Shown piece after piece: positions 2,042 through 42,417 of a DNA stretch of 64,000 nucleotides; position 1 is the first letter of the stretch, and each line of letters begins with the position of its first letter. The notes under the pieces are model-generated. The model had not been told where the DNA came from, ran no database searches, and saw only the letters and a program-made list of their open reading frames with translations. The DNA is from Haplodiscus bocki (Eukaryota). A program made the translations under genes and the position numbers. The DNA lies in NCBI GenBank assembly GCA_965655095.1, contig OZ296653.1, positions 56,544,001-56,608,000 on the forward strand, in the 5' to 3' direction.

Positions 2042-5000
2042 GGGTCCAATCATTCCGTCTTTCCGTGGTGGACCCAACACGAAGGATGCTCCTCCGTGCA
2101 AATGGAAGTTCAGCGGTCAAACGCCGGACAATCATCCCTCCTTCGAGAAGAAGAGGGGCCTCAACTGGGATCGGGTTTTTGACAACGGAGCAAATCACGC
2201 CGGCCGAATTGCTCCGGATTCTTCTCATCAGAGCTGGCATTGAAACAAATCCTGGACATAGATGGAATTGCTGTATCTGTCGCAAACCCTTGAACAAGCA
2301 AGGAAGTGTGCGTTGCTCTAAATGCGGGAGGTATGCCCATTACAAATGCACCCCTTTCAGCAACGCCAGCCACGTATCTTATAACTGGTCCTGCACACAA
2401 TGTACGAACCATCCACCGCCACCACCTCCTCCACATCCAGCCCAACAACAGGCCTGCTTACGACTCCTGCAGTTCGATTGCAATGGCATCAGTGGAAAGA
2501 AGGAAAAAATTGCAGCTTACCTTCAAAAGAACCAGATATCGATCGCCGCCATCCAAGAAACGAAACTGACGAGCAAAAGCAAGGCGCCTGACTTTGAGTC
2601 TCGCTACAACTTCATCAGACAAGATCGCCCCAACAACAAACCTGGTGGAGGTTTGGCTTTCATCATCCATGAAAGCATCGAATTTAGAATAATCCCACAA
2701 TACAGCGACGAGGTCCTCGAGACGCAAGGCATCAAGGCGAAGTTTGGCAATCTGGAACTGAAAATAATCAACTTCTACCTTCCTCCTAAGAGCAGTTGCC
2801 CTCCAGATTACCAAGAAACCCTCAAAAGCCTGCTCTCGCATAATAACGCCCTGCTGCTCGGGGATGCTAACGCTCACGACCCAACCTGGTTCTCGACGAT
2901 TGCAGACACTTGAGGCAGCAAACTCTCAGCAGAGATCGAAGAGTCCGAAATGGGAATCTTGAATGAAAACTGCCCTACCCGCCTGCCCTCGAACCAGCAG
3001 CAGACATCCCCTGATATCTCTTGGTCACGAAATCGTTGCTGACCTCCTGCGATTGGCCGACCGAAATCGGTCTCAGATAAGACCATCTACCAATCCTCAT
3101 ATCCATTTCATCCTCATCATTCCTGGAACAAATCCGCGACTCCAAGCGCACTTTCATCAACATCGCCAAATCTGACTGGCCTGCTTTTCAGGAAGAGATA
3201 CAGTGCACTCAGAAACCAGCCTGGACCAACGGATGTATACCACGGTGAAGCTGTACTGCGGAAAGTCATAAACACAGCATCGAAAGACCACATTCCGTCA
3301 AGCACACGCAAAGACGGGATTCCTCAGCTCTCAGATGAAGCCAAGGAACGGATGACAAAAAGAGACGAGCTAAGAGCCCGTGAACCACACTCGCCAAAAA
3401 ATGAGGAGGTAAATAGCCGATTCAGATGTCGATACGCAAAAGCAAAGAAAAAAAATGGCGCGAGTTCATCAGCTGTTTCGACCACAAAACTGACTCGTCG
3501 AAAGTATGGAGAACCAAAAAGAATCTCGACAACAAAGCAGCAAAAATCAAAAGGAATGACCCAATCAAATTCAAATTATCAAAACGCAGGAAAACTATCA
3601 CTGATCACAAATATATGTCAGAACTATTTAACAAACAGTTCACTTCGCCAAGGCCGCACAGCACCTCGGAACAGCATCGAGTCATCCGAAGCGAGATAAG
3701 CAAAAGAGGCCTAGACAATGGCACTTTTTTCACCGTTCCCGAGGTCGAAGAAGCAATTCGAGCAGCCAAAAGCTCAAAAGCGGCGGGACCCGATGGGATC
3801 ACTATGATTCATCTGAAGCATCTGGGATCCGGAGCCCTCTGCTATCTGACAAAAATTTTCAACATTTCTATATCAACCTGTACCTTACCTTCTATCTGGA
3901 AACAATCGACAATAATTCCTCTTCTCAAACCTGCTAAACCAGTAAACGACAGTAAATCGTATCACCCTATATCACTTCTATGCCCTGCTTCCAAAATTTT
4001 CGAGAAGTGCCTATTACCAACCATCCAGAAACACCTGAAATGCAAACAACATCAGCATGGTTTTAGAAGGAATCACTCGACGATATCGGCTCTGAACGAG
4101 ATATCAGCTGCGATTACCGATGGCTTCAACAAAACGCCTCCAGCCGAAAGGACGCCGCTCATAGCCCTGGATTTGTCGAAAGCCTTTGACCTAGTCTCTC
4201 ACAACACCCTCCTCGCAGATATAAACAGGTCGTCACTACCGGGATATGTAACCCACTGGCTGGCCTGCTACCTGCATGGAGGACAAGCGAAGACTATGTT
4301 TCGCGATTCACTCTCCAAAAGCCGCAACGTCCGATTTGGCGTCCCGCAAGGCTCTGTACTAAGACCCATTTTATTCAACTTCTATGTTAGTGGCGCCCCT
4401 CTACCTCCAGCCCACATCAACTTGGTGTCCTACGCAGACGAAATTACCGTCTACGCGAAGAGCAACAATGTGGACTCATTAGCTACAGAAACATCAGGTT
4501 AACTGGAGCAGCTATGCGAGTTCCTACAGCAACGCCAAATGGCAGTGTCACTAGAAAAGTGCTCAAGCACGCTTTTCACCCCATGGACGAAGCAGTAAAG
4601 GTGCAAGCCTGCTGTAAAAGTCAACAGCACGATCCTGGAGGTCAAGAATAACCCGAAAATTCTCGGCCTGACATTTGACAACAGACTCACCTGGGGACCA
4701 CACTGTTTGCTATCATGCCAGAAAGCAGCAAAAAGGGTAAACACTCTAAAAGCCTTGAGTGGAACCACCTGGGGTCAATAGAAGGAGACACTGCTCAATA
4801 GCTACAAAACTTTCGTGCAACCAGTCTTGGAATATGCATGCCCGGTCTGGACCCCTGCTGCTGCACCAAGTACAATCGAAAAACTGCAAAAAGTGCAAAC
4901 TGCAGCGCTACAAGTCGCAACAGGTTGTACTACCATGGGCCCGATACAGCATCTGCACGACGAATGCAAAATCCTACCGATTCGAAGACACATTCGAATG

Positions 5001-5567
5001 AAGAGTGTACAACAGCAATTCACTCACCATATCCCGAATCACCCTGGAAGCAGACTACGTAAAAGAACACTTGCCAGAACAAAACACTGCCTCAACTCGA
5101 GATACCAACGTTACATAGAAGCACTTCGCGACTCCGATTCAGATGATGAAATATCTTCTCGTGAGCGACACAAATCAATGATGCAGTTCATCCATACCAA
5201 CGAGGTAAAAGACTACATGGATACACGTGAAGACAATAAAGTCCTCAATTCCCCAGCACCAGACATCAGCGCAGATGAAGAGAAGTTACCACGCAAAACT
5301 CGCAGAATTCTGGCGCAACTACGAAGTGGATACTCGCCTCACTTACGAGCAGATCTCAAGCGTACGAGAGTAGAAGATTCAGATCTATGCCCGGATTGCA
5401 AGAAGCAGAAGCATACAACGAACCATCTATTTGACTGTGAAGCAAATCCCACAAATTTGTGCGTGCTATCACTCTGGGAATCCCCAACAGAAGCAGCCAA
5501 TTTCCTCCGTTTACAGGACGATGATTCCACTGAGGCCGCCTCCTGAGCGAAGGCAATCAACAACAAC
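2042..5567 (+). mobile_element. Full-length, decayed single-ORF non-LTR retrotransposon (Ingi/Vingi-like; PHD-APE-RT-Zn finger)
   Basis: 13-bp TSD AGTGATCGTAATC at 2029-2041 and 5568-5580, and an (AAC)n tail. PHD finger (CCIC...CSKC...HYKC...WSCTQC), APE motifs (IQETKL, GGGLA, LGDANAH), RT motifs (GPDGI, LDLSKAFD, GVPQGS, YADE) and a C-terminal LAQLRSG...CPDC...HLFDC. No RNase H is evident. Several stops and frameshifts (2911, ~3000-3420, 4500, ~4596, ~4780). Confidence 0.92.
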
Positions 5568-7860: not shown

Positions 7861-9269
7861 CCTCAGCATAGAGTTGGTTCAAACTTGACTGAAAACAAGT
7901 CGACCCTATGTGGCTTCGATTTGAAAAAGGCTTTCACGATTGAACAGCAAAAGAATGTTGTCACGATGTGATATGTGGGAAGCCCTTGGAGCGGCTGATG
8001 CCGTACATTCACCACATTATGCAGCGTACTGTGGTCGAAGGCGTGATCTCTTCAAGGTTGAAAGTTTTCATGTGGCAATCAATCTTCCAACTACGGGTCC
8101 CTTCTTTTTTCATTAATTAAAAGACATACTCCGGTCTTGCCAATCGCTGAAGGTTGTGCTGTTTGTTGATTACAAAAAATTGACAGCGATTGGTAAAAGA
8201 GACGTCGGAGTTTTAAAAAATCTTGGGACGCCAACAAATTTGTTCTTAATTCTCAAAAAAATACTACTAAATCTATAAAACCAGTGCTTCCACGCGCAGC
8301 TCCTAATTCATTTTAGTTAAAAAAATGAGCATGTCTGCAGTTATCTCGAGTGCTAATTGACGAGATGCTTAAATTCAAATTAAGCCAACAATTTGGCATT
8401 CCAGGCATTAGATAAAGACTGCGACACTACGTTTCAAATATGCAACTTCTGCAACACTACAAAAATACAAAAGTATCATCAAATTCTTTTTGCAGTATGG
8501 ACGTCTTGTGTATGGTTGCTGTAGCTCTGATTCTTTGACAGCCATTCAGAAACATGAAAACGAATCGGAACCTCGGATCACATACTGACTCGTTAGTTGA
8601 GATCAAAGGTAAACACTTCACATCAAAGATATTTCGATATCAAACATGTTTTTGCGGATTCTGTTGATCATTTCAAAGCATTGTTTGAAAAACAAGCCCC
8701 TGGCGGCGCACGAACATAGCAGCGACTGAAATAGAAGACTATGAATTTTATTCAACTAATATTCAACTGCCTGGAAAACCTCTCAAAAAACGTCAACAAC
8801 AAGAAAGAAGAAATTACGTTCGTGATACTCTTGCATGAACTGAGAAACATCAGGAAAAAATTGCGGTAAATTCCGATAACTTCCCCTATCCCAAAAGTTT
8901 CACGACAATTGAAACATCAAAATTTTCCGTGCTACCCTTTTCCTACTCTAAAATTTTTCCACTGCAAGTGACATTCCCGATACCTCACCAAAAATCTCAA
9001 TATTGATATGTAGAAAACATGAAAACCAAATTCACAAATTTAAAATTCAAATTTGACACAAATGGCGGAAAATTAAGTTGCGGTTAATCGATAGTGCTGA
9101 ACTTTACAAGTTTACAATTTTGATGTTTAGGATAATTGATTGGCGGTTAGTCGACAGTGCTGAATTATTATTTTGCGCCATATTCTTTAGAATATGGAAA
9201 CAAAATCTTCCCCTCAAATAGGTGTGTTTTTTCACGATGTTGGCTCGCGTGAAAACTTTTTACCAAAAT

Positions 9270-9925
9270 TGCCAAGAATGCAGAAAATGCAAAGAATGCA
9301 AGAAATGCAAAAGATGCAAAAAATGCAGAGAATGCAAAGAAAGCAAAAAAAAATGCAAAGATTGCACAGAATGCAAAAAATGCAGAGAAAGCAAAGGAAG
9401 CAAAAAATGCAAAGATTGCACAGAATGCAAAAAAAGCAAAGAATTCAAAAGATGCAAAGAATTCAAAAACAGCAGAGAATGCAAAACAATGCACAGATTG
9501 CAAAAAAGCAAAGAATGCCAAACGTGCAAAAAATGCAGAGAATGCCAAGAATCCAAAAAATGCAAAAAAAGCAAAGAATGCCAAGAATTCAAGAGCTGCA
9601 AAAAATGCGAAAGATGCAGAAAATGAAAAGAATGCAAAGAATGCAACCATTGCACACAATGCAAAAAATGCAAAGAATGCAAGAGATACAAAAAAGCAAA
9701 GAACGCAAAGAATGCAAAAAATGCAAAGAATGCAAAGATTGCCTAGAATGCCAATATTGCCGATTTTACCGAGATTGTCAAGATTGCCAGGAATGCGCAA
9801 AATGCTAAGAAGGTAAAGAATGCAAGAAATGTAGAGAATGCAAAGATTTCCACGATTGCCAGAAATGTAGAGAATGCAAAGATTTCCACGATTGCCAAGA
9901 TTGCCGAGCCTGCAAACATTGCCGA
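9270..9925. repeat. Degenerate 9-bp tandem array (AAGAATGCA)n inside the HINE
   Basis: About 70 imperfect units, which produce open frames on both strands. Confidence 0.95.
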
Positions 9926-10067
9926 GACTGAAATAGTAAGTTTTCCCAGAACGTTCAAAATTTGGGTCTTTTTGAAAAAACAGATGGGTTTTCGGAAAAA
10001 ATTTGATTTTTTTTTCAAATACGCTAAAGGTGGCAAAATCGTTGTAGAATGCGTAACAAATAGTATT

Positions 10068-10597
10068 TGTAAAAATTATTGGGGTGTTCTTTTGTTTGAA
10101 TATGGGTTTCAGTCCTTTACTAGTTGCAAGACTTTGATGTACTTTTTAGTGGCTATCTTCAGTGCGTGGTGTGAGGAGGAAAACACTGTTGAAGCATTGA
10201 AGAATTAATTTCAAGTATACAGGCAACTATTTAGTAGCATTTCCTGAAGAGCTCTCTTCTCCAATCTATTCTTTACAGCTTCATAAATTTTCCAATCTCT
10301 TTTTTTTGTTATCGTGCGGCAATTAGAATTCAATACATGTTTTTTCTTCAATATGTCTTCTTTCCATTTAATTTCCATGCGGTTATTAGATGTTTATTTT
10401 TTGCCCACTGGTTTATTAGTTGTTTTTTTTCCGGATATTATTATTTCCGGTTAGGGAAGGGCTTGTTGTCAAGAAAAGATACGTCAGAGAATTTAATAGC
10501 GCCAAGATGTAATGATTCAAAAATGGATCAGATTGAGATCATGCTTTCCCACATTGTAGGATTTAATTAATTTCAAAATATTCGTCAGAATATTACA
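10068..10597 (-). repeat. 3' LTR
   Basis: Direct repeat of 22382-22915, with about 20 differences by eye (roughly 96% identity). Confidence 0.95.
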
Positions 10598-10680
10598 CTA
10601 GCCGACTTTAAGTTTATTTCTCCGGCTCTATTTTTATTTGTTGTAATTATTACCCATGCTTTCTTGCAGGTTAGTTCTTC

Positions 10681-12866
10681 TTAAACTCGGTGCATTTGTC
10701 GATTGAGTTGTGCATATGTAGGTGCACTTTCTTCTCTTGTTTCCATCAGTTGAGATTCGGGTAGTAATAAACTTTGGTTACGCCATTGAAAATTTTCATC
10801 ATTCTGTACCCGATCCAAATGTTGGTCTTCTACCACCATTATCGGTTTTAGGGGAATTTTTTGTTTATCCAGTTTGTGAGAAAAGGGTTGGAATTTGTGG
10901 AGTTTTTTGTAGCGATGTAGAGCAAGCATTAGTCTCAAATGTAGTAGTGCACTAACGATGAATACTACAATTCCAATCATCAAATGACTTTTCCACGATA
11001 TATAGTTATTAAATTGTTTCTCAAATGAGGGCTTCAACATAGTTAGGTTCTGCGCTTTAGGTTCAGCTATTTGTTGAATATTCTTTTTGTAGCCGTATTG
11101 TGGTTGGGCTTGGAGTTCGAGTTTGAGGGACTTTAGTAGTTTCATATTAGCTTCCACTTTCGTATTGTAGTAGGGAAGTTCATCCACTGTTGGTAGCAGG
11201 CTGAACATGTTTGCCATTGGTTGAGGCAGTTCCACTTCCAGTTTGACAGGTGGGACTTTTGCACATGACGATAGGTCAGACCGGATTCTGATATTTTCGC
11301 CAGTTAACTGTTTACCACATTCTAGTGTTATTAAGCAAATTCTACATCCTTTCACTGGTTTTGAGCCTGCCAGTGTTGTAGCATCCATATAATTTTCTTT
11401 GAATTCGAAGTTGGCCTGTGCTGAAGTTATAAGCCATATTCCATATCCCAGGTTTGTTGCTTTGACTTTCAGTGGTAGTGGGACTGGGACTGTATCACAG
11501 ACTTCTAATGCATCCATAATGCTTCCAAAATATAAAGTTGCGAGCCATGACGAGTCTTCATTTTCTGTTGCCCAAGTTTCACGGCAAATTCGATACTTGC
11601 TTGAACCAATACATTTGTCAAGTTGATCTCTCGTTACAAGCGAAGTTTCCATCAAGTTTTCTGATACTGCCAAATATTCTGCCTCCACATCCCGTTTAAT
11701 TGCCATGTCTTCGTCCATTTGGGGTAGAGGTACCACTATTGCTTTGTACACTGTGAATGCTGTTTGTCGTGATGCAAATGGGATTGCCATTGTCATCCAA
11801 AGACCCTCATCAAAAGTCAATACATCCAATAGTAAACGTGATTCATAATATGCCAGAAGTTCTTGTTTTGGAATGGCCAATGTAAGTCGGTGATCAGACT
11901 TCTCCTGTGAGTCGTCAACCACTTTTAAAATTTGTTCCAAAGACTCTTTGGGTAGTAGGGACATGGGAACATAATTTGAAAGCAGAGAGGGGGTAGCGTT
12001 CATGATATTCATCTGGAATGCGAATAGAGCGGCGCGATACGCTTTGACATTGCTGTAGATTAGCGAAAGTAGGGAAATTTTGTATCAAAATTGAAGTTCA
12101 CCTGTTGTCGTGTGTGTAAGAGTTGATCGCAATTGCGCATGTCGTGAATATTGTCGCGGAGTACTTGGAATTGTCTCTCGATCTTTTGCCAGTTCTCATT
12201 TTGGGTTTCTATAATTTGGTTTTGGATTTCGTGAAAGAGGGAAAAATCTTTCGACACACGGAAAAATTTTTCATCGGTTGCATTTGCAAGTTGTTGTAAG
12301 TTATCTCCAATGGCTATTGCATATTTTCCTAACTTTTCAATGTTTTTGGCATTCGTTTTGGCCTTTTCTTGGCACGAGCCAAAAATGCCTATAATGCCAC
12401 AGTCATCTGATGCAACGAACATGATGCGTGTTCCGAATAATCCAACGGCACCAGCAACTGCGGCTGCTATGGGTAGCGCTCTTCTAGATCTTTGGCTTTT
12501 TTTGATTTCGGTACCCTTCAGGTAGGAGTATACCCCTTGTTTTATTTTGGTCAGGTCTTCATCGGCGAACGATATTTCCTTTTTTGTTTCTTTTAGAAGC
12601 CAGTCTACTTTGAATTCGTTTTCACTTGTGTTAGTGAAATTAAGATAACAACGGTAGGTCGGCATTTGCCACATGTTTTGTAATTCTCTTGCTACTTTGT
12701 CTAGGCTTTTCGTTAGTTGAATGTCAAAGGTTGGGTAGGGGACTAAGAACTGGGCGTTTACAAATTTTTCTGCCAAAAGTATTTTTGTCTCTTCAAGAAA
12801 AAATACTCCTCGTTCAAGACCTTTATCATCTGCTGCTGCTACTCTTAATAGTAAAAGTAGAATCAT
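10681..12866 (-). pseudogene. env: env: class I fusion glycoprotein (F-protein/errantivirus-like), one frameshift near 12060-12090
   Basis: Signal peptide MILLLLLRVAAA, furin site RSRR followed by hydrophobic fusion peptide ALPIAAAVAGAVGLFG, heptad-repeat region, Cys-rich region (CIGSSKYRIC, CRICLITLEC) and C-terminal TM (LMIGIVVFIVSALL) with a cytoplasmic tail. Confidence 0.9.
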
Positions 12867-12990
12867 TATGGGAGGCTGGTTTTCTTTGTTGAATTAATTA
12901 ATACGTTGATTATTGGAATACTGTTAGAATGCACATGGTTTGAGTTATACTTGCAGTTTATAGTTCATCTTCTAGATAGTCCAGCAGTTC

Positions 12991-13275
12991 TTATTTCTTT
13001 TTGAATCCCGTTTCTGGATTCAATGATTTGTAGTGTTTGCTCAGTGTATCGTAGAGGCTAACAAATTCGCTTGTGTCACTGTCGACTTCCATATAGTAGG
13101 GCTCATTGTGGGGTTTCAGGACTCTCATTCGAATGAAAGGACAACATCCACATTGTTGTAGTTGAATAATATTGATATAAATTTGGTCTTTTTCGGGTGG
13201 TGTCCATTGTAGGAGTACTTTGAATTGTAGTTGAATTGGGGTAAGTTGCCAATGAACTGTAATTGTATTCTCCAT
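12991..13275 (-). CDS. Accessory ORF A2 (94 aa), unknown function, paralog of 13691-13975
   Basis: ATG-initiated and uninterrupted. Shares LQWxPPxKD, CxCC, SxFVSLY and a C-terminal NP with the neighbouring ORF. Confidence 0.75.
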   Translation of the reverse strand: MENTITVHWQLTPIQLQFKVLLQWTPPEKDQIYINIIQLQQCGCCPFIRMRVLKPHNEPYYMEVDSDTSEFVSLYDTLSKHYKSLNPETGFKKK

Positions 13276-13690
13276 ATTGATTCGCTGATAGAGCTTCGAG
13301 GTATTTCTTTAATTCGATTTAGAAGGGGTTTAACTTAATTTCAAACTTCTCCAGCCACTCCTAAATTTTTTTGCCATGTGAAAAAGTTAGAATACTTCGA
13401 GATTGATTCTGGTTTCTCGAGTTAGGGGAGTGAGTAGCTAACGGTTGGAGAGTAGATTCTAGAATGAATGTTGCAGTAGTGGCGCGATTTCAATGAATAT
13501 AAATACACAATCGGTGTTTCGGCGGATATTAAAGTTGATATGGGCGGGACTGCGACGGATATCAAATTGTGTTGGTGCGGATGTTTAAATGAGTTCGATG
13601 ATAATGACAGGTTTTCAGGCCTGTCATGTTCTCAGTGCGAGTCAATTGATTACTAGCACTCTGTGTTTGTCAATGTTCCAGTACAACTAA

Positions 13691-13975
13691 TCAAGCTGTT
13701 TCATTAATTTGATTTCCCATGAATCGAACTAACTCATCCAGCTCTGTTGGATTAGTGAAGACATATAAACGGAGCATTTTGTACAAGCTAACGAATTTCG
13801 TGCTTGTCGTTGAATTTTCTAAGATCGCTTGTTGTCCGTTATTCATTTTAGGATTGCTAATGAGAAGTCTCAAAGGTGCACAACAGGAGCATTTTTGCCA
13901 TTGAATTCTGTGTATTGTAAGCAGAATATCTTTGCCAGGTGGCTTCCACTGTAAATTAAGATCAAATTTCTCCAT
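13691..13975 (-). CDS. Accessory ORF A1 (94 aa), unknown function, paralog of 12991-13275
   Basis: LQWKPPGKD...QKCSCCAP...TKFVSLYKML...TNP aligns by eye with ORF A2. Confidence 0.75.
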   Translation of the reverse strand: MEKFDLNLQWKPPGKDILLTIHRIQWQKCSCCAPLRLLISNPKMNNGQQAILENSTTSTKFVSLYKMLRLYVFTNPTELDELVRFMGNQINETA

Positions 13976-14129
13976 TTCTGCTGTTCTTTTTTGTAATAAT
14001 TTTAGTTGAATAATGTCATTTAACCGGATATGAGTTTATTTTGGTTTGTTTGGTCAGTTTATGAGCCCGCTGTCATCTATTTTTGGGTGACGTGTCGTGG
14101 GGGCAGTCTTTTTTCCGCTTTGTTTTTAG

Positions 14130-14420
14130 ATGATTTTCAGGTGTTCTCCTTTTCAGAACATGGAATGTGTTCAGGTAATGTTAAATCAACTTGTCTCGTT
14201 ACTTTGTTGCCCGGACGGTACAACAGTTGTCCGGAATGGGGTAAAAAAGAGCTTTCCCCCAGGAAGAGATCCTGAATGCCCATCTGTGGTGGTTGTGCCG
14301 TCTGAGGCACCTCAGGAATCTCCCAGTGAGTATGGTAACTGGCTTACACTCGCTGTGCCCATTGTGGCGTTTCTACTCCTGGTCGTATATTGGCATCTCA
14401 AAAAAAGATCTGCAGCGTGA
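14130..14420 (+). CDS. Antisense small single-pass membrane ORF within the LTR element
   Basis: C-terminal hydrophobic stretch WLTLAVPIVAFLLLVVYW followed by basic HLKKR. An in-frame ATG at 14160 follows a tttcag acceptor-like site. Confidence 0.45.
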   Translation: MIFRCSPFQNMECVQVMLNQLVSLLCCPDGTTVVRNGVKKSFPPGRDPECPSVVVVPSEAPQESPSEYGNWLTLAVPIVAFLLLVVYWHLKKRSAA

Positions 14421-14742
14421 AAAGAGTCTCTGCCGTTCAAATGCTGTAGCTTGACTGAAGTGATTTTTAGAATGTTCTTGAGTTTAGCACTGTTCTACTC
14501 TTTCTCGCTCTTTGTTTTATTTTATTGTTACTACCTTGAACAAAGTTGTGTTATTGTTGCTGCCGCCTTGTTATTGATTGTATAGTTTTGTTTTAGATTT
14601 ATTTTGATTGTAATAATACTGAGATTTTAATTTAAGTTAGAGTACCTCATTGCCGTTCCATTTGAGTTTAGGTTGAGTGGTAGGTATGTTGTTAAAATCT
14701 GAACCGCTTGCATAATGTCAATGCCATTTTTCAGAGTGTAAA

Positions 14743-15302
14743 ATGGAAAAGTATAAATTGCTGCTCAGTTTATGCCAAGAGAATTTCAGTGCTTTGGAGC
14801 CAATGTCTGTGGAGCAGGCTGCCAAATTTCACTGTCCTTATTTGGTGAAGGGGTCAGCTGCTCTTACAAGTCAGTTAAGCATCAAGATTTAGCGGTAAAT
14901 TGTACCAATATCCGTCAGTTACTAAGGTATTTTAAAAATTGGGGCGAGAAGCATAATTTATGTTTATTTACTGGAACAAGAGTGTTAACTGCGTTGATGC
15001 CACATATTCGAGAATTACATAGAACTGACTAATGGTTTAACAGTGCCATAGTACCCATCAGTTCAGTTCATAATCCTGTGCTCCTGGTAGCCACTAGTAA
15101 CTGTGTGACTGGGTGGCACAGGCATCATGATCCGCCGACAGAAGTTGTGGCCTCTTTTTTACGGGGTCAGAAAATCTGGGTTTTTGCTTCAAAAGGGTCA
15201 AAGGAGGCAGCTCATTTATCAAACGTTAACGAAGCCAATAATTTCGAAAATTTTATTGAGGGGGTTATTTATAAACGGAAACATCGGAGAGTTGCCAAAT
15301 AG
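14743..15302 (+). pseudogene. Antisense JmjC/cupin-like (2OG-Fe oxygenase) remnant within the LTR element
   Basis: VLLVATSNCVTGWHRHHDPPTEVVASFLRGQKIWVFA resembles the JmjC core (T-x-x-H-x-D/H...G-x-K-x-W). 14772-15302 is one frame with a single stop (15030), and the upstream frame has PYLVKG. The distal His motif is not found. Confidence 0.4.
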
Positions 15303-15919
15303 TTGGGGAAGTTTAATGTTTTCTCTAAAGTTTGATTGGTTGAGTTTACGTTTTTTGCCATTTAGTTATTTAATTTCTGCGTAATGCGGGATCCCTTATA
15401 TCCTATTAAAAACGGCTTTGAATTAGGCGTTCGTGAAAGTCTCATGCGTTGGACTCACTTGTGAATTTCTCTAAGCCGAAGTCCGCGTTTGTCATTTCAT
15501 TTTTTTTGGCTGAAGATTTCTTTTTGTTCAAACATCTCAAAAGATATAGTTTCTCCTTGCGCTATGGTCTAGACCTAGTATCCTATTACAACCAGTGTGG
15601 AGCATGCTTCATGCGAAGGTATATAGGACTGCTTAATGACTTTTGTAGATCTCAGCCGAAGTGCGCGTTTAAGGAAAACTAGTATGGTTTAATGGGGTTT
15701 TGAGACTTAACTCAAAACTGGTTCAATCTTCGCTAGTATAGGTAGCTAAAAACCTGTCCTTGATCATTGCATGCAGAGAATTTTCATTCTGCATGTTTTT
15801 CGGGGTGTTTCTTGTTCGTTGACTCAAACAATGTTTGCGCTTCCACTGTTTTTTGGCGGCTACTATTGAGGTTCATTTTGGTTATCTTTTTTGTAAATCA
15901 TCTGGGGTTCTATATCAGC

Positions 15920-16402
15920 TTAGCTATTAACTTTTATTAGGTTGTGCTTTCGGAGGCATACTGTTATCCCTACTTTTATCTTTTGGAATACTTCATGTAG
16001 AATTTTATTCACTATTGACAGTTGAAATTTGTCTAGGTCGCATCCAAGTTCAGGTAGTCGAATGTTTGTCACTCCATGAGTCTCTGCATGGTTGCGCATC
16101 AAGACGAGACTGTTTTTCAGCGCATCATAAAAAAGTTTGTGGAAATATTTGGGTTTCGTTATCAAGTTGTATATCCATCTTCTTGAATATTGGTCGTAGA
16201 ATGCAAAGACTGATCCTGGTGCCAGCCCTCTGGAAGCTTCGGTTTTCATTTTTGGGTAGAGTTGGTCGAATCGCTTGGCGATACCTGCTCCCATGAAAAA
16301 GTCAGAAGAAACACAGTGTCCCATGCTAGAGGAAGTTCCAAAAAGATCGTCTTCTACTATTGACACTCTGGAGGTTCTCTGAGCTACTTGGATTGCGTTC
16401 AT
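15920..16402 (-). CDS. TARG1/OARD1 (Poa1p-like) macrodomain ADP-ribosyl hydrolase carried by the LTR element
   Basis: Colinear motifs DLF, GHCVSSDFFMGAGIA, WIYNLITK, YDALKNSL, GVTNIRLPELGCDLD, HEVF and ITV match the OARD1 pattern (GDLF, AHCISEDxxMGAGIA, YIYYLITK, MPRIGCGLD). Confidence 0.92.
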   Translation of the reverse strand: MNAIQVAQRTSRVSIVEDDLFGTSSSMGHCVSSDFFMGAGIAKRFDQLYPKMKTEASRGLAPGSVFAFYDQYSRRWIYNLITKPKYFHKLFYDALKNSLVLMRNHAETHGVTNIRLPELGCDLDKFQLSIVNKILHEVFQKIKVGITVCLRKHNLIKVNS

Positions 16403-19400
16403 GTCTGTTGTACTTCGTTTTTTGGACGTTTCTTCTTGTGTTGCTCCTAGTCTTTAAAACAAATTGCTTTTGCTGGCGTTGCCGGCGGCGATTATTAAGA
16501 GGATCAACGAAGTTTCTGGCTTCGACAGATTGTCCTTGGTTTGTGCGTTTAGCACTACGGGTTTTTTGAAGTTGTTGTCCAGCCACTTCCAGAAGACGTT
16601 CGCTTAGCCTATTGGTTTGTTGTTCTTGTATCCTTGTTGAGCGTCTCGGTGCTGTAGTGAATTGCACATATTCGTCAGATTCCTCAGAAGATTCAGGTAA
16701 TTGTGCCGTGAGATACGGAGGTGGTGTTAGTATTCTTCTAGGTTGTTCAAGTCTTTGTGCTTGGGGAATTGTTAACGGTTCCTCCATCTCAGGTGCTACC
16801 TCTGGTTGATCAACTGTTTCCTCTGCTGCTGGTGGTTGTTGAGGTTGTACCCCAAACGAGATTGAGACTCGAACGGGGCTGTCGAAGTTCGGAGTTTTCT
16901 TGTCAGGAACGGTTGGGTCACTTTCCAGAAGAGAAGGAAGACCGTTGTCAAAGAAGTCTTGTTCGCCTCGAAAATATCCCAGTGTTGGATCTGTCTGAAA
17001 GTTTTCATAAAGGATATCGTTGATGTCTGTTACCTGGTATTGGGGCTTGATCGGGCGTAGTCTAAATCGGTGAACAATTTGAGTATAATTTGTTCCAACT
17101 TTTCTGATGAAACAGTTCGAGTCGGTCAACACCTCCACTCTATAGAGAGCCAGCCAATTTTGGATTAGTTTAGGGCAGAAAGCAGATTGTTCTGTTAGTC
17201 GAGGGTTCAGCAATAGGCAGTATGTTTGTTCCTTAAGTGGGTTTGCCCTTGCTTTTTGGTCGCAGTACCTTCTGTACCTGTTGAAAGATTTTGCGAGACT
17301 CTTTTGTAGTTTGGAACTTCTTCAACAATTCATCACGTAGTGATTCTACAAAGTCGTAGTTGAAGGCTGATTTTTAGATACAGTTGCTGTAAAAACGAAT
17401 ATCCAAAGGTTTCACTGGGGCTCTTCCGTGGAAGATAACCGTTGGTGCGCATCCGATTGACGTATGATAGGATGTGTTATGGATGAACGTTGCTAAGTTA
17501 AGGAATTTATGCCAGTTGGTGAAGGTTTGGTTGCTATTTAGTTTCAGAAATCGCGTTAGGGCTGCCTGTGCCCTTTCGACTACTCCAATTGTTTGTGGGT
17601 GTTTCAATGATGCGTGAGATACTTTTATTTCTAGTAGTTGGGTGAGTTCGTGAAAAAGGTCTGACACAAACTGCGTTCTTAAATCTGAGAGGATTTCTTG
17701 TGGTAGGTAACTGTGTTGGAACATAATGGAGACTAGGGAGGTTGCCACTGAGAGTGCACTGATTGTGGTCAGTGGTACTGCAAAAAGGTATTTTGTGAAA
17801 ACATCAATAGCTGTCAGCACATACTTGTATGGTGACGATGGAAATGGTCCCAGAATGTCTATCTGCATAAGGTCGCCTGGGTAAGATTTCAATGTCGAAA
17901 CCTCTTGCAGTGGTGTTTTTAGTCTCGAGGGTTGTACCTGTTTCACTTGCAGGCATGTGGAACAGTTTCTGATATAGTCTGCAATTAATTCCACATAGTT
18001 TGGGCAATAGAAGCGTTTTCTGAATTCCTCGATGGTCCGCGTGAATCCCAAATGTCCTCCAGTTGGAGCGTTGTGTAGTCTGTACATAACTTCTTTGAAA
18101 AATGTTTTTGGTACACACAATTGTTTGTACAGCATTTTTCCATCGTGTGCGTAGTATCTTCTGTAAAGTGTTCCATCTTCTGTAAATAATCGTCGAAACT
18201 GTTTGAGGTACTTTTGTTCTTCTCCGGTAGAGTAGATGTTCGCTGTAGGTGCAGAATCAGTTTCCAACCATTTGATCACTTTTGTAATCACCGAGTAAGA
18301 ATTTTGTTCCTGTTTTAAGTTAGCTTTTGTTGTTTCCAATTCGGGATAGTCGTCCATTGGGTTTTTGTGCTGAGTTGCATTAATTTCTGTTGTTTTCTTC
18401 TTGTATTTCGTGATTCGTAGGTGACAGTTGGAAGTCAAATTCTTTAACTGTTTTACGGCCTGGTCATAGTTTCCAGATTGTTTGAGTGTGATCAATGTGT
18501 TTATATATACTACTTGAAGTAGGTCTACAGGTAAGTCATCGGCAAAAAGCTCATTGATGGTATTGTCTGGTAGCTGTGCTCGTACGTCTATTTCAATTTC
18601 TCTAATCGGGAATCTGTCTGTCAGTTTCAATTCAAGTGTTTCGTTTGGATTTGATTGCAAGTGAGATAGAAAGTCTGCGGCTGCATTCGCTTTTCCTGGA
18701 ATGTGTGTTACCACTATGTTGAATGTTGTAACTCTGTCAACATAATTCCACAGTGAGGGGGGAATGGTTTTTGCTTGGAAGAATCTAGTCAAACTTTTGT
18801 TGTCAGTCAGTATGAGTACCGGTTTTTCGCTTCCCCAAATAAAGTGAGAAAATTTTTCTAGGGCAAAATAGAGAGAAAGGAACTCCTTGCAATATATTGA
18901 CATTTTCAATTGTGCTGTATTGAAGACTTTTGATCCCAATGATACAGGTGCATAAGATTTTACATTTTCTCCTTTGTTGTTTGTGACATAGTCTTCTATC
19001 ATTAATACAAATCCGCTCCAGCGATATTTAGCGTCACATAGTATAGCATAATGGAGTCCTGGTTCGGCAAGTCTAAGAGTTTGCGTGGATGTGGTTTCAA
19101 GTTTTTCTGAGTATCTGGAAAGCATTTCTGATCTCATCTGTTATTTCAAACAAGACATTCTTACGCAGAAGTTTGTAGAAAAGAATAAGATAATCGTTCA
19201 GATTCGGTATGAAGCTGCGGAAGAATTGTAGAAAGCCTATTAGTCGTTTGACTTGTTTCACCCATTTTGGTATTTCCAGTGTTTTTAGGAATTTTTGGAT
19301 TTTTTTTACTTTCAAGTTGTAGGCTTTCTTTTGTAATTGCATTTCCGAGAACTTTTTCTGATCCGAAGACACATTTCTCTGGCGATAGTTTGAGTCCTGA

Positions 19401-21194
19401 TCTGCGTAAACATTTGAAGATAAGTCTTAAATTAGGTATGAGTTGTTCAACTGATTCCACTCCACATCTAATATCATTCATGAACTGTGTGCAAACGTTC
19501 ACTGAGAGACATGGCTCCAAGTAGTTTCTCACAAAAGCACTGAAGCCTGTAACTGATCTGTTGAGACCTCTAGCTAATCTCTGGTAAGCCATAGTTCTGG
19601 AGGCAAAATTGAACGCAAGTAGTTGTACCGAAAGAGGGTCAGCCATTTGAACACAATGGTAGGCTTGAGAGCAATCTAATTTACAAAAGATTGATTTTCC
19701 CGCAAAGTGTGTTGTTGTATCTGCCATCGTTGAAATCGGGTAGTTATTGTTATGATAATCATGTAAGAGAAGATGATTGATTCGGCGTAAGTCCACTAGA
19801 ATTCGAAGTTCTGCGTTTGGTTTTCAGTGTGCAAAAATTGGGCTGCTGTATTTCGAATGGTTGAGGCTCGTGATGATGGCGAAATATTGTAGAAGGGTGA
19901 GCTCTACTTGTAGTTCTTCACGCAAGTGGATTGGTGTTGGGGGACTTTGAGCGTAGACCGGTTGGTCGTGCTCTGGTGTTAGTTTCATGGAGATTTCGGA
20001 ATTATATCCAACGTCAAATCTGTGTTTTGCAAAAATATCCGAAAATTCGACCAATAAGTCTTCAACTTGTTGTTTCTCGTCCGCTTTGAGTATAGATTCG
20101 TTCCTTTTGAATCTTTGTAAAAACTGGTTACGGTATTCATCATTAATGCGTGGGTCAATACTGTCTAGTTCTTTTAATTTCTGTAGCTCATTGTAAATGC
20201 TTTTTTCAACACCTTTCAGTGCTGTTGGGTTTTTGCAAGTTTCCGGTGTTGGGAACCAAAACTTCTTAAAGTCGGGTTTTGGTCGAGGTGGTTGAGAATC
20301 TCCATTAAATTCTTCATCGATTATCAGCTGATTAATTTCAGGCTCAAACTCGTCTGTATTTTTGAATTTTGCCAGCGTTAGTAGTTGGGGGTCTATCGGG
20401 GTTAATGTTTCTGCTTGTTGTGGTGAAAGAAATTTAAACTATGCGACATCCGAGTTGCGGGGAATTGTGATGTCATTAGTTTGGAGATTTAGGGCAGATA
20501 AGTACAAATTTCCTTGGGAGTCAGTTCGCGACAAGGAAGAAGTGATGCACAATCCAGTCTTTTCTTCAAAACTTACTTTTCGTTCGACTATACCACATAC
20601 ATGAGCAAGTCGTTTGTTTTTCGTTTGGAGATTGCATTTCACTGTTGTTTGTTGGTTGGGGGCAATGACGCATTTTTCCATTGTTCTAATAGTCTATTGG
20701 GGTTTTCCGGTTTTATCTGTTTGCGTTGATATTTCGTTCAACTGAAGCGTCAACTCTGGTAATTTCATCAGGTTTTCTCGTGGGTAGAGTTCAATGGAGT
20801 TATTTTTGAAAAATGGATTTCCCAAAATGATGCTATTTGTGGTTGGGAGTACTAAAAATTGTTCTTTGAAATGGTTTTTTGCTATTGCAAAATCGAATTC
20901 GATTTGGCCACGCACAGGTATAAGTTGTCCTGAAGCTAGTTTCACTTTATTGACTTCAGAAGGTTGTGAGATGATTGCTGTTGTTCCGAAAGAGGATTTT
21001 AAGTCATCATAGTCCCTTTCACTGATTGCATTTGCACAGGCACCATTGTCAATTAATGCTCTCCTTTGTTGGTTGTTAGGGAACTTCAATGGAACATAAG
21101 ATAGGACATCACCTTCAAGAAAGATGCATGCAGTTATTTCATTTTGCTCATTCTTCGTCTTCCGTGGCCGTTCTTCATACTGGCGTGGCGTCAC
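16326..21194 (-). pseudogene. pol: pol (protease-RT-RNase H-integrase with a long low-complexity C-terminal tail), multiple stops and frameshifts
   Basis: PR: ALIDNGACANAI. RT: YSSPIF, DLRRIN, LDCSQAYH, FMND (decayed xxDD). RH: LCDA, KEFL, TDNKSL, NAAADFLS. IN: HNAPTGGH...CSTC, IDILGP, AIDVFTKY, HPQTIGVVER. Confidence 0.95.
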
Positions 21195-22339
21195 TCGTTT
21201 TTTGGTGCGGTTTGATATGGTATTTGTTGACTTCTATTCGCTGGTCTCCTTTGATTGCAATCTCGTGCGTAGTGATTGGGGTAGCGACAAATATAACATA
21301 CCTGTTTAGAATATGTTGTTTCTGCGATATGTTCTTCGTTCATCGATTCTTGAATTTGTGGTGTGTTATAGTTGGAGTAGTAGCTGTAGTTATTTTTGGT
21401 CTGATTTCCAGTGAAGTAGCTTCTGTTGTTATTGAAGCGTCCTCTTCCTCTATCATTGGCATATCCTCGTCCTCTAAATTTTCCTGAGTTGATGAATCTG
21501 TTATTCCCTCTATAGTACTGTGTTTGGTTGGACCTCTGATAATTCGGATTCGTTGGCGGGCTGACGTTTAATGTACTGATTCGGTTTGAAAGTTCATATT
21601 GTTGTTTCAGCTCGTCTTGTTGTTGTGTAATTTTTGTTACTGCTCCGACCAAGTTTTCTGAGAGTGAAGAACTCACCTCATTAAATGCGTCCCTTGATCA
21701 ATCTTCACTTGGGCATAGCTCAAAAAATACCATTTGTCGTCTAGCCACTGCACATAGGTCTTGCACTGTCGCTGCTTCATTTTGGTCAAGCAGTTTCCTT
21801 CTGATGAAGTTGGGCATTGCATTTGTGAAGATTTCTTTTATCCTTCTGTTTCTTTCGTTCACAGCGTTGTTAAGTATCACTTGGTTTGCTGCTTGAGCTG
21901 CTGCAACCCTGTCTATTTCACGTTGGTCGCCAGGTGGATTTGCAGGTGGAATTGGGGCAAATACCGGATCCGGGTACGCTTGGGTGGCTTTGATTTGTAC
22001 TTGAACCAAAAAGTCTTCTGGGTTACCAGTTTTGTGGTCGAACTTCAAGTTTTGGAGTTGCAATTTGTGGAGTTCCCTCAGGTTAGGGTTGCAGTAATGA
22101 TTTCTAAGAGCTGTAATCGATAGTTCGAAGTTGTCTCTAGTTGCTTGGGGTAAAGTTCTGAAGAATTGTAGCGCTGGGTCAAGTAGGTGTAGTTGTAGGA
22201 AATGTGGTTGGTTTGCTGCTGCAATATTGCCAACATTGATTAAGCTTCTGAGAAGACTCTCGAAGTCTGGCCAGTTTTCATCTGCCTTTCCGCGAAATGG
22301 GTTCAAAGTAAAATGTGGTTGTGGGTTTGTCGCTGCCAT
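21191..22339 (-). pseudogene. gag: gag with CCHC zinc knuckle; one in-frame TGA at 21698-21700
   Basis: PFRGKADENWPDFE capsid-like N-terminus and CYICRYPNHYARDC (Cx2Cx4Hx4C). ORFs 21698-22339 and 21191-21676 are in the same frame. Confidence 0.92.
21197..21203 (-). promoter_or_regulatory. -1 ribosomal frameshift heptamer A AAA AAC at the gag-pol junction
   Basis: The heptamer is in the gag frame just before the gag stop, and pol is open in the -1 frame. Confidence 0.75.
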
Positions 22340-22360
22340 TATTCTTGAATAGTTGTTTGC

Positions 22361-22381
22361 CTCACGTCCTCCTTGTCACCA
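22361..22381 (-). promoter_or_regulatory. Primer binding site (tRNA-Trp-like)
   Basis: TGGTGACAAGGAGGACGTGAG directly after the 5' LTR. Confidence 0.75.
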
Positions 22382-22915
22382 TTTAAAAATTTTTGGGGTG
22401 TTCTTTTGTTTGAATATGGGTTTCAGTCCTTTACTAGTTGCAAGACTTTGATGTACTTTTTAGTGGCTATCTTCAGTGCGTGGTGTGAGGAGGAAAACAC
22501 TGTTGAAGCATTGAAGAATTAATTTCAAGTATACAGGCAACTATTTAGTAGCATTTCCTGAAGAGCTCTCTCCTCCAATCTATTCTTTACAGCTTCATAA
22601 TTTTTCCAATCTCTTTTTTTTTGTTATCATGCGGAAATTAGAATTCAATACATGTTTTTTATTCAATATGTCTTCTTTGCATTTAATTTCCATGCGGTTA
22701 TTAAGATGTTTATTTTTTGCCCACTGGTTTATTAGTTGTTTATTTTTCCGGATATTATTATTTCCGGTTAGGGGAGGGTTTTGTTGTCAAGAAAAGATAC
22801 GTCAAAGAATTTAATAGCGCCAAGATTTAATGATTCAAAAATGGATTAGATTGAAATCATGCTTTCCCACATTGTAGGGTTTAATTAATTTCAAAATATT
22901 CGTCAGAATATTACA
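22382..22915 (-). repeat. 5' LTR
   Basis: Direct repeat of 10068-10597, adjacent to the PBS. Confidence 0.95.
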
Positions 22916-23502
22916 GTATTTTTTCATAAAAATAGCTTTCCGCCCCAGTTTTCAAGTTTTTTGGCAAAAACAAACAGATAACTATGAAACTTGGAAAAAA
23001 AATCAGAAAATACGATGACGTAAAGGTGCTTTTTCGAGAAAAAATTGTTTTCTTGTTTTTAGAAGACTTTTTTTTACAAAAATGAGAAGGCGCAAAATTT
23101 GCCGGAGGTAGCCGGCCGTCTCGTTTCTCATCTCTTGAAAAAATTCAAGATGTTTTCGAATTCCATTCGCTATAGCTGATATCAAATATAATTTTGTCGG
23201 AACATCATTCTTTGAGAAAAATATTCAAAATATTAACATTCAAGATTATACCACGACTTCCAAACATTCCTTCAATGATCAACCCATAATTGCTTCTTTC
23301 ACTACGCTGATTGAAGCAACGTCGGCACTGCGTACAATAGGAGATATTTACAATTAACTAACTTCACAATGACACGTATATGTACTAGCAAACTTGCCAG
23401 ATCGGCAAATTAAACATTCAAATTGTCCAAGACACTTTAAAGAGCCGTTCAACTTTTTTTTCGGCTTCAGAAGCACTATTATTACACTAAAGGAAAAAAG
23501 CA

Positions 23503-38464: not shown

Positions 38465-41400
38465 TCAGTTGTTAACAATACTGGCTGTTCGGACGGTATC
38501 TCCATGTAACTCGGCATCGCCTTCTTTGGGAGTGACAGAAGCGAGAAGCTCATCGTCGTTGTCAGATTCCAATCCCATGTCTCCAGTACCTCCGTTGTTT
38601 AAATGGGAAGGAAGTGATTGCTCAACCCCGTTGGAGTTCACATGATAGGATCCAGAGCTGACGTTTGCGGTGGTGGGCGACGAAGCATGTGGTGCAGTTT
38701 CCAAGTCTTCTTCGCTCCCAGCAGAAGGGTTAATACGCGGAGGTGGCTGACTAGGGGGCATGCGGATTGATGTGTGGACAGTCGTAGTTATGGTGGCATG
38801 CTGAACATCTAAGACAGTCACAACGAAAAATATTAATATCGAACTAAACAGTTATTATCCCTTTAACAGACAAGTCTGCCAGTTTATCATCCACACGTTT
38901 GCAAGAAACATGGTAGTGCTGATACTTAAACGTGAGCGTAAAAATAAAACATCAAGATTTACATAAAGAAGACGCAAATATGAACATTCTTGAATTTAAA
39001 CGTGAGATACATTTAGGCAACAAATTTATCAACTATCTACCTTCAAAAAATACTAATATATGTTGTGGACAATTTCAACAATTCAAAATTTTCGGAAAAA
39101 CGACAGTAATTAGTGCCAAATATAAACGACACAGACAAAATAGACGGGTGAATAACTATTATCACATGCACAAACCTCTATACGGACTGTTTTCAGGGGC
39201 ATAACCACTTGTCTGCATATTATCCAGGTGGCCTACAGGTGAAATACTATTATTGATCGGGTAATCATCATTCATGCGGATATTAGGACCAACAGACGAG
39301 TAGTGATGGGTATTGGGGTCATCCAGGGAGCCACCATTTGACATCAGCCCGTTGTTCATCCTTGACTGGATTTGTTCATGTCGGCGGGGCTCGTATTCTC
39401 CACTTTGGGGACTAGGCGGAGCTCTAATACCTCCACCCTGTGAGTGTACCGACGCAGGCAATGTTTGTGTTCTTCGGCCAGAGAGTGTATTCCTAGCGAA
39501 TGTATCTCCACGAGTCAAAGTCGCTGACTTTTTAATCTGGTACTCAGTTTGACCCATTAAAGTGGGGTGACTCGGGCCAAAGAAGGCTTTTCTAGGCTTG
39601 GGATTTGCAGAAAATAATCGAAAAAATTGATGATGCTCAATGCATATCTTCCAGAAATTTTTAGCTTCCTTTTGGCTATCCATTTTGAACATTATCACGC
39701 TATCAATTCCATCGTAATCATTGCGTAACAGTGTGATCGCAAAGTCAGTTTTCTTGTAAGATATTTTAATGATTTTCGCCCATGCAAACCTGTTCAGTCG
39801 AAGCTGCTCGCGAAACACAAGAATGCCACTAGCACTGACTCCGAGATACAGACGCACTCCCTGCAAGTCAGAACAGGGTTTAGTAGTAACTCCATAAAGG
39901 GTCAACTTCTTAGCAACCTCCAAATAGTTTTGTTCAGCTTCGGCTGTTGTCATTCCACGATGTGTTCTGTACAGCTGCAGAATTCTTTCCAGCAACACAG
40001 TAGCCTCTGCTTGTGATACATGTGGAGAGAACAAGGGCAGGTCGTGAATGCTGTTCAGGTCTAAGTCGGGCGTATAGTCTCCCTGGTCAGCTTGACACAC
40101 GAAGGAACCTAAAATTACACCGATTATCAAGTAATTCACATCCATCGGAAGGGGAACTATCAATATCACTGTGAAGAGATCTAGCAAATTGCGTCAATCC
40201 TTCAACCATGAATCCGTCACCTTTGCGTTAGTTTTTCCTTTTCATTTTTTAAAAACCAAAATTATACTTTCATAGTATAGAACTATTTGTTTCAAGCATG
40301 AATCATACAATTTGTTGTCAAAACTTGTGCACATTTGGAATCAATGTGCAAAATTTGTGACAACTTTTTTCAACTCGAGTTTTTGATATCATTAAATTTC
40401 ATACCGGTAACTGCAGTAATGTCCTAGACTGTGGAAACTGCAAAAAAAACAAGACGCCCGGCTAACTCCAGGATATTTTCCGCCTTCCAGATTAGAGAAG
40501 AAACGTTAAGAAGCAGTAATTCGAACGAAAATATGTCTGAAACATGTGAGAAATTCCATCAACTCAAAATTGATAACTTTTCGAAATTTCTATATATTTT
40601 TTCAAAAACCCAACTTCCAGTAAAAAAAGTACTTTTTGAGAAAGACTACTATAATAGGCGAAGTCTGCGGCAACTTTCGAAGAGAATGACAGAATAAAAA
40701 TGTTTAGCGTGCATTTTTGCTTTATCATGCAATTCGCAAATTTCATGTTAAAATATCTGAAAGTTGAGATAATGATTTTCCGTCCTTACATGAAATATGA
40801 CCGGAAAATGATTTAAAAAATAGGCGCAACGAGCGATTTGACTGGGTTTTGACTACATGCGCCTAATGAACTAAGAGCGTTCCGAACGCTTCTCCGACAC
40901 AATGGTCGCTCCTCCAGTTTTTGAACTCTAAGTTATGCAAGGAAAGTTGTCATCTGGAAAAAGCATTTCATAGCCAATTTCTCCCGAACCGCAAACCCAG
41001 TGAATGGATTACAGCAAAACGGAACCAGAAACGATTTGAATAAGGACCCAGAAAAGAGGGGAAGTAACTTTTGGCGAGATGACAATTGGAAAATATCGGT
41101 AAACGGAAAGTAATCTCAGAAGGAAACCTATTTTTACACGACTGTTGGCTGTCGCGGAATTTTTTCCCCATATTCCGATAAATCCTCCGAATCAGTAGGA
41201 ATACATTAGACCTGACTCAGGCAGTTTACAGGTTTCTGAGGCAGTACTCGAAGATAGTAGTTTTGCAAAATTACCAATTGAGTAGTGAAAATTCTGACTT
41301 TTCACGTTGTTTTGGCAGAAAAACCTATGAAGGCGAAATATTTCCGGAAACTAGCAACAAGGTAGCCAAAAGTTTTCCGGAGTCGAATCAGCTACAATTA

Positions 41401-42417
41401 GCCCGCTAGGTACTATATGTACTGATATTTTGGTGCTTTTCAAGAATATGCTGTCGATGACACAAAATCTGCGAAAAAAAAAGATGGTGATATTTTCGGA
41501 AAACATGGATTTTTTCACTAATTTTCGCGAAATGTACCGCTAAAACTCCACCGAAAAAAAACTTCAAAAAATTTTCAAACTAGCAAGGAATCAAGAAGAG
41601 TTGATTTCGCACCGATTCGATTAACATAGGCACCCATTGTATGTGCATGGTACTGATGCTAGTCAAATTCGACGATTTGCCCCACAAATTTTCGGCGTTT
41701 TCAGTTTATTTTATCAAATAAGTTCTCCGCGGAAAAATTCTTGACGCTAAAATTTTGGGACATGGTCAATTGCAACCTTGCGTTATAGTTTTCAAGAAAC
41801 TAGAACGATCCAACCAATACGCTCTGAGATATAACGCTTCAAAGTCAAGAAACGCAGAGTGAACAAATTCTAAACCGGCAAAACATGTCTGAAGAAAAGA
41901 AAAACGACACTAGCTAGCCATTGAATAATTTCATTTTCCATATCTAAAATATGGAGGCGGGAAATAACAAAAACTAACCAAGCAGAGCCAAGGTAGAGAG
42001 CGAACAAGGCAGCTTTCCTTTAGCAACATCGTCACGTATTTGGAGATAGAAAAGATATCGGCTGTATTCCATCAATGTTGTAGGATCGGGAGGATAAAAT
42101 TTCACATTCATAGCAAATGCGGGATTGTTGGCTTTCTTCATTTGCTTCTCAACACTTTTGGCCCGGTCAAGCCAAGCAATGGGTTCCTTCTCATCAATGA
42201 CGTCAAATGTCAAACTGAAGTAGTCCCTTTCCTCCAAGGGAGGATTCATGCTTCGAAACACTTCTTGTAATAACTCTTCACCCTTCGCTTTGCGACTGAC
42301 TGTAACCTCTATGGGGTGACCATCCAGCAAGTACACCTGGTAACTTTGCTTGGGTCCCGAGGGGGCGCTCCTGCTGGTATTACTGGGTCCACTGCTGTAG
42401 CCTTGCTGCGCTGTCAT
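38465..42417 (-). CDS. FERM-domain protein of the band 4.1/coracle (EPB41) family, ~571 aa; exons 42417-41979, 40108-39176, 38808-38465
   Basis: VYLLDG, ERDYFSL, WLD, VKFYPPDP, SRYLFYLQIRDD, LALLG|SFVCQ, HRGMTTAEAE.NYLEVAKKLTLYGV, LGVSASGILV, RFAWAKIIKISYK and FWKICIEHHQFFRL. Both introns are phase 1 with GT-AG ends. Confidence 0.93.
40448..40760 (-). mobile_element. Diverged HINE-like fragment in FERM intron 1
   Basis: acaagacgcccggctaactccaggatattttccgcc matches the family terminus. Confidence 0.5.

Follow-up and report, generated by a model that had tools for sequence, protein, structure and literature searches.

The human macrodomain enzyme TARG1/OARD1 (C6orf130) removes ADP-ribose linked to Asp or Glu residues of proteins. 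TARG1 has also been shown to reverse thymidine-linked ADP-ribosylation of single-stranded DNA (PMC8501950), and a 2024 paper reports that DNA ADP-ribosylation made by PARP1 is removed by TARG1 at telomeres (PMC11102865). The exchanges G43E, I44E and G123E abolish ADP-ribose binding and activity of TARG1, which also binds PAR and is recruited to sites of damage (PMC5928194). TARG1 is a free-standing cellular protein, while the related bacterial DarG macrodomain belongs to an antitoxin. Macrodomains of the MacroD type are built into the replication polyproteins of plus-strand RNA viruses such as coronaviruses (Mac1), alphaviruses (nsP3) and hepatitis E virus, where they serve as tools against host PARPs. 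Accessory domains captured by LTR retroelements include integrase chromodomains, dUTPase and the ALKBH m6A-demethylase domain of orchid Ty3/gypsy elements (PMC9289625), which is the nearest precedent in kind for the case described here. Env-carrying, errantivirus-like Ty3/gypsy elements of metazoans have recently been surveyed (PMC13524379), however, neither this 2026 survey, which also does not mention ADP-ribose, nor the DARTS paper mentions macrodomains, and our full-text searches on macrodomains in retrotransposons, errantiviruses or LTR elements found no report of such a combination in the papers that could be searched.

Here, we analyzed a stretch of 64,000 nucleotides from Haplodiscus bocki (assembly GCA_965655095.1, contig OZ296653.1, positions 56,544,001 to 56,608,000 of the forward strand), hereafter called the window, which has no N runs and in which nothing looked human. 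A sequence-only reading had proposed that an intronless ORF of 160 aa, overlapping the 3' end of a pol gene in another frame, encodes a TARG1/OARD1-type ADP-ribosyl hydrolase with the catalytic Lys/Asp pair retained. This observation is confirmed by our analysis. A phmmer search against PDB sequences returned only human OARD1/TARG1 (E 3.3e-22), with residues 9-148 aligned to residues 9-148, hence the ORF is fully colinear with this enzyme and the similarity is far beyond chance. By counting along the TARG1 sequence, the Lys of LITK (residue 83) and the Asp of GCxLD (residue 124) align with K84 and D125, whereas residue 122 is Asp where TARG1 has G123, so that the motif reads GCDLD. An AlphaFold model built on 45 natural relatives has a pLDDT of 88.3, and its eight best Foldseek matches are TARG1 structures (TM 0.81-0.89; TM 0.85, rmsd 1.9 A and 35% identity for the best match, and about 35-37% identity to TARG1 overall), followed by DarG and Poa1p. 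The NCBIfam model of the DarG macrodomain is also matched (E 1e-8 to 1e-11). In contrast, alphavirus and coronavirus macrodomains appear only from rank 19 onwards with a TM of about 0.7 and about 10% identity, thus the domain does not fall closest to the MacroD class. The Pfam Macro model (PF01661) scores below its gathering cut-off (15.3 bits against 22, E 0.02), but natural intact relatives score only 11.7-18.6 bits and the more distant Pol-fused relatives P0102 and P0173 (P numbers denote related proteins) pass at only 25-28 bits, hence this model appears to be insensitive to these domains.

The ORF lies inside a 12.8-kb LTR element on the minus strand (10068-22915), the parts of which are listed in the table below together with features of sibling loci (L numbers). 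The two LTRs both begin TGTAAT, are 96.4% identical over 535 aligned columns and are flanked by the same pentamer. Pfam domains follow each other in the order gag, protease, RT, RNase H and integrase, which is that of a Ty3/gypsy-type element, and they are followed by a low-complexity tail, the macrodomain ORF, about 3 kb with small ORFs and env. The two env pieces of the window received no Pfam hit; they are 60-66% identical to the env of L003, which carries a precomputed Pfam Baculo_F hit. The window copy is decayed. Beside the one-base length difference that separates the macrodomain from Pol, it carries three stops in the PR-RT part, one stop in gag and further changes of frame.

Table. 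Coordinates of the element, its neighbours in the window and corresponding features at other loci.
Location	Strand	Feature	Basis and remarks
22916-22920	-	Target-site duplication, upstream copy (AATAC in element sense)	Same pentamer directly outside both LTRs
22382-22915	-	5' LTR, 534 nt, starts TGTAAT	A TGG-starting primer-binding-like site follows at 22381
21194-22375	-	gag (DUF1759-like part, then CCHC zinc knuckle)	Pfam DUF1759 E 3e-5, zf-CCHC E 1e-3; in-frame TGA at 21698-21700
19164-21233	-	Protease and reverse transcriptase	Pfam Asp_protease_2 E 0.005, RVT_1 E 3e-13; in-frame stops at 20694-20696, 20439-20441 and 19824-19826
17377-19140	-	RNase H and integrase (zinc-binding domain plus core), open	Pfam RT_RNaseH, Integrase_H2C2 and rve; shifted from RT (two shifts between about 19370 and 19100) and from the tail (shift between 17377 and 17321); one frame in L005
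16329-17321	-	Integrase C-terminal tail or linker, about 330 aa, Pro/Gln/Glu/Arg-rich	Continuous in one frame with the macrodomain in L001, L002, L003 and many long Pol ORFs
16326-17213	-	pol-tail ORF	Overlaps the macrodomain ORF by 77 nt in another frame
16451-16459	-	Change of frame between Pol tail and macrodomain	One-base length difference from in-frame siblings
15920-16402	-	TARG1/OARD1-type macrodomain ORF, 160 aa	ATG at 16400-16402, stop TAA at 15920-15922, open frame up to 16453; Lys83 at 16154-16156, Asp122 at 16037-16039, Asp124 at 16031-16033
14772-15302	+	Remnant of a conserved gene antisense to the element, weakly JmjC-like	Stop at 15030-15032, truncated; tblastn 49% identity to L005:11127-11939 (-)
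14130-14420	+	Conserved small antisense ORF, 96 aa	CCPDGT motif, hydrophobic C-terminal stretch; homologues at the same place in L005 and L003
12991-13975	-	Two related sense-strand ORFs upstream of env (13691-13975 and 12991-13275), 94 aa each	Homologous stretch at the same place in L003, L004 and L005
10684-12893	-	env in two open pieces (12063-12893 and 10684-12084)	50-68% identical to env of L003 and L005
10068-10597	-	3' LTR, 530 nt, ends TTTTTACA	
10063-10067	-	Target-site duplication, downstream copy	
9168-10036		Tandem repeat with 9-bp period next to the 3' LTR	Gives long spurious ORFs on both strands
2065-5546	+	Non-LTR retrotransposon remnant	PHD finger, endonuclease/exonuclease/phosphatase domain and reverse transcriptase
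39162-40187 and 41974-42417	-	Exons of a band 4.1-like FERM protein	
L005:11127-11939	-	Antisense JmjC-like gene, about 270 aa	Intact
L003:11333-12105	-	Antisense JmjC-like gene	
L004:11400-12209	-	Antisense JmjC-like gene	
L005:12209-12541	-	Small conserved antisense ORF	
L003:12284-12556	-	Small conserved antisense ORF	
L007:16858-17253	-	Small conserved antisense ORF	
L009:18080-18544	-	Small conserved antisense ORF	
L007:15403-15759 and 15051-15353		Examples of two more conserved antisense ORFs	Also carried by L006 and L009
L005:4723-4725		In-frame TGA in gag	Same position as 21698-21700 of the window
L006:8979-10004		Weak dUTPase-like match	Between protease and RT
L007:9016-9981		Weak dUTPase-like match	Between protease and RT
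L006:13601-13996 and 17130-17528		Two copies of integrase tail plus macrodomain	
L002:1-20765		Tandem array of integrase tail plus partial macrodomain	At least 13 units
L013:8158-11436 (Athalia rosae OU795000.1)		Pol fragment with two OARD1-like macrodomains	XP_048515211.1

The possibility that a host OARD1 retrocopy landed by chance in or beside a dead element could be suggested by the separate frame and the decay of the window copy. Near-identity to the host gene with absence from sibling elements had been named beforehand as the mark of a one-off capture, however, the siblings refute this possibility. A search of a 90%-clustered protein collection found 26 relatives at E<=1e-3 with 55-99% identity, all from one ENA assembly, ERZ26859043, which is evidently the assembly of the window, and 1999 relatives were found in the 50%-cluster library. 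Several of the 26 proteins read straight from the integrase tail into the macrodomain. The loci L003, L004 and L005 are colinear with the window element from gag to env, as is L006 from a second assembly, ERZ25074608, and the domain is found at the same place. Copies within one genome differ by up to about 45%, and no non-element relative in a library of 1.84 billion proteins exceeds about 45% identity.

The DNA alignment of the junction between tail and macrodomain showed that L001, two units of L002 and L003 are in frame, whereas the window, L004 and L005 each carry different indels within a few bases. Hence, the ancestral state is one reading frame and the overlapping ORF of the window represents private damage. 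Its ATG aligns with Leu or Met inside the linker of the siblings and is therefore not a conserved start. A programmed frameshift at this junction can be rejected for the same reasons, because the indels differ and many natural Pols are in frame. An alternative genetic code or programmed read-through was likewise rejected as explanation for the pol stops, since the three stops of the window are not shared by siblings, and the stops show no pattern of G-to-A hypermutation. Only the TGA in gag, situated between the capsid-like and zinc-knuckle parts, is shared with L005, while L003 has a sense codon there and the gag ORFs of L006-L009 are uninterrupted; shared descent from a defective master, recurrent mutation or read-through might be responsible.

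To estimate the breadth of this architecture, related proteins were searched with the 1109-aa Pol of L005 and the hits were scanned with a profile of natural macrodomains. In total, 41 Pol ORFs of 900-1883 aa end, or nearly end, in the domain, among them P0183 (1778 aa, a cluster of 121 members), P0186, P0191 (1818 aa), P0187 and P0193. Two of the 41, P0107 and P0173, belong to other lineages, which leaves at least 39 natural uninterrupted Pol ORFs ending in the domain in frame. The loci L007 and L009 of ERZ25074608 have uninterrupted gag, Pol-macro and env ORFs with Pol lengths of 1330 and 1818 aa, and L008 comes from a third assembly, ERZ25071366. In a Pol tree, the macro-bearing Pols form one clade with an SH-aLRT support of 100% nested among relatives with long tails but no detectable macrodomain, and the two exceptions inside the clade are ORFs that stop early. 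In macrodomain trees, these Pol-fused domains lie on one side of a 98% branch from 123 other OARD1-like representatives, and one origin is not excluded, although all trees are quick searches with SH-aLRT support only. A degenerate macrodomain in the tails of the macro-less sister Pols is not supported, because neither a profile search at maximum sensitivity (hmmsearch --max) nor hhalign (probability 0.6%) nor Pfam gave evidence for it.

The domain evolved under purifying selection. The Nei-Gojobori dN/dS between macrodomains of the window family is 0.15-0.25 where dS is not saturated, with bootstrap upper bounds of 0.40 or less, and in the other assemblies pN is 0.25-0.47 against pS of 0.67-0.85. 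Decay after insertion can only raise these ratios. At the protein level the macrodomain changes two to three times faster than RNase H-integrase, for example dN is 0.24 against 0.085 for L005 versus L003, and some copies have changed the MGAGIA loop. Among the 41 long Pol fusions, which were read as natural copies and not from a consensus, Lys is kept in 39, Asp in 37 and the G123-equivalent Gly in 36. Over all 216 related domains, Gly is present in 207, and Asp appears at this position only in the window, where it is counted twice since P0001 is the window's own protein. The sequence-only reading had treated the change from GCGLD to GCDLD as harmless. However, given the effect of G123E in TARG1, the window copy is probably dead as an enzyme, in an element that is itself broken, while the family, as inferred from the retained residues alone, is presumably not.

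Collectively, the interpretation given by the sequence-only reading is partly supported. It was right that the element encodes a TARG1/OARD1-type macrodomain as a stable part of its family and that this domain extends integrase in intact relatives, but the extension is an in-frame C-terminal domain of Pol and not a frameshift product as it had considered, and the proposed roles against PARPs or in the protection of cDNA and integration intermediates are plausible but hypothetical. Our analysis shows that the ORF is the stranded C-terminal domain of the Pol polyprotein of an env-bearing Ty3/gypsy-type endogenous retrovirus-like element, in which intact relatives read protease, RT, RNase H, integrase, a long disordered tail of about 300 aa and the macrodomain in one frame, and that the domain has been kept with its catalytic pair under constraint in one clade, with a single gain as far as the trees allow, while this clade spread through at least three assemblies, probably of acoel worms. 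From sequence alone we infer that the domain is translated as part of Gag-Pol, travels with integrase in the particle and the pre-integration complex, and acts there as an ADP-ribosylhydrolase. In this view, it would strip ADP-ribose that host PARP-type transferases put on element proteins, nearby chromatin proteins or the DNA and RNA intermediates of reverse transcription and integration, and would thereby keep replication and integration going. Single-stranded DNA, ends and gaps, as exposed at these stages, are of the kind that activate PARPs. We assign a probability of roughly 0.6 to this explanation.

The main rival is that the macrodomain serves mainly as a reader of ADP-ribose or poly(ADP-ribose), which docks the integrase complex on ADP-ribosylated chromatin such as PARP-marked sites or breaks and so chooses integration sites. 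The position at the extreme C-terminus of integrase after a long flexible tail fits this idea, because integrase C-terminal modules act as tethers in chromoviruses, Ty5 and MLV, and the PAR binding and recruitment of TARG1 to damage sites are in line with it, hence binding rather than hydrolysis could be what is selected. However, the widely kept catalytic Lys and Asp would not be needed by a pure reader, which makes this alternative rather unlikely, although both roles are not mutually exclusive. It might also be possible that the relevant substrate is nucleic acid and not protein, either base-linked ADP-ribose on the single-stranded cDNA or phosphate-linked ADP-ribose on the ends and gaps made during integration. 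The closest families after TARG1 are DarG DNA ADP-ribosyl glycohydrolases and TARG1 itself acts on thymidine-linked ADP-ribose, but acoels are not known to possess a DNA ADP-ribosyltransferase and sequence alone cannot separate protein from nucleic-acid substrates in this class, so that we regard this variant as unlikely too.

If the main reading holds, the fusion resembles the RNA virus case in that a macrodomain is built into a viral replication polyprotein and would, by analogy, undo host ADP-ribosylation, but it is of the TARG1/DarG type and sits in a reverse-transcribing, integrating element. Like ALKBH in orchid elements it would be an eraser of a modification kept by selection in one clade of Ty3/gypsy Pols, with a different fold and chemistry. 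Compared with the surveyed env-carrying metazoan elements, which share LTRs, gag, the pol order PR-RT-RH-IN and a downstream env, this family adds the Pol-fused macrodomain and conserved antisense ORFs between pol and env. An integrase-fused TARG1-type domain kept across a whole clade would show that reverse-transcribing, integrating elements also meet ADP-ribosylation, and would give a direct handle on whether element proteins, chromatin at the integration site or the cDNA itself are modified. It also adds a new entry to the short list of host domains fixed in LTR retroelement Pol proteins and points to acoel genomes, since about half of the genome of Symsagittifera roscoffensis consists of LTR elements (PMC9911081), as a place to study this conflict. 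In this regard, the FERM exons in the window are informative for the host, which is probably another acoel. The nearest relatives of the larger exon (72% and 76% identity) sit in 90% clusters with band 4.1-like protein 3 of S. roscoffensis and Convolutriloba macropyga, both acoels of the family Convolutidae, and the Symsagittifera-type exon lies in ERZ25071366, the assembly of L008.

TARG1-like macrodomains seem to have entered Ty3/gypsy-type Pols repeatedly. In the sawfly Athalia rosae, a single uninterrupted ORF of 1093 codons reads RT-RH-macro-macro-IN, with both OARD1-like domains between RNase H and the integrase zinc domain, which looks like an independent capture in an insect, though no LTRs were seen within 8 kb. 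Other Ty3/gypsy-type Pols with OARD1-like macrodomains in other positions are P0102, P0173, P0052 and P0057. A far-reaching and so far rather doubtful view would be that ADP-ribosylation is a front-line defence against retroelements in early-branching bilaterians, which a clade of their endogenous retrovirus-like elements answers with an integrase-fused TARG1-like eraser, and that such captures represent a general, hitherto unnoticed counter-defence of reverse-transcribing elements. The elements carry other possibly modification-related genes as well. The antisense gene between the Pol-macro end and env matches Pfam JmjC only weakly (E 0.0014, 19.5 bits against a cut-off of 24), but over the whole profile and with TGFHxD and TVHFV motifs; an AF2 model reached a pLDDT of only 35 and supports no fold, and PDB sequences gave no hit. 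The dUTPase-like stretch in elements of the second assembly is likewise below the cut-off (E 0.0025).

The small antisense ORF encodes 96-154 aa with a CC-x-x-GT motif and a hydrophobic C-terminal stretch, and is present across the family in two assemblies. L006 holds its second copy of integrase tail plus macrodomain about 3.5 kb downstream of the first, together with duplicated antisense ORFs, which indicates an internal duplication or a nested partial element. Finally, at L002 a piece of the element has become a tandem array with a period of about 1520 bp, which a tandem-repeat search limited to periods up to 500 bp did not detect, and each unit, comprising the integrase tail plus the first 90 codons or so of the macrodomain with shifted remnants of the rest, has an ORF of 254-257 aa.
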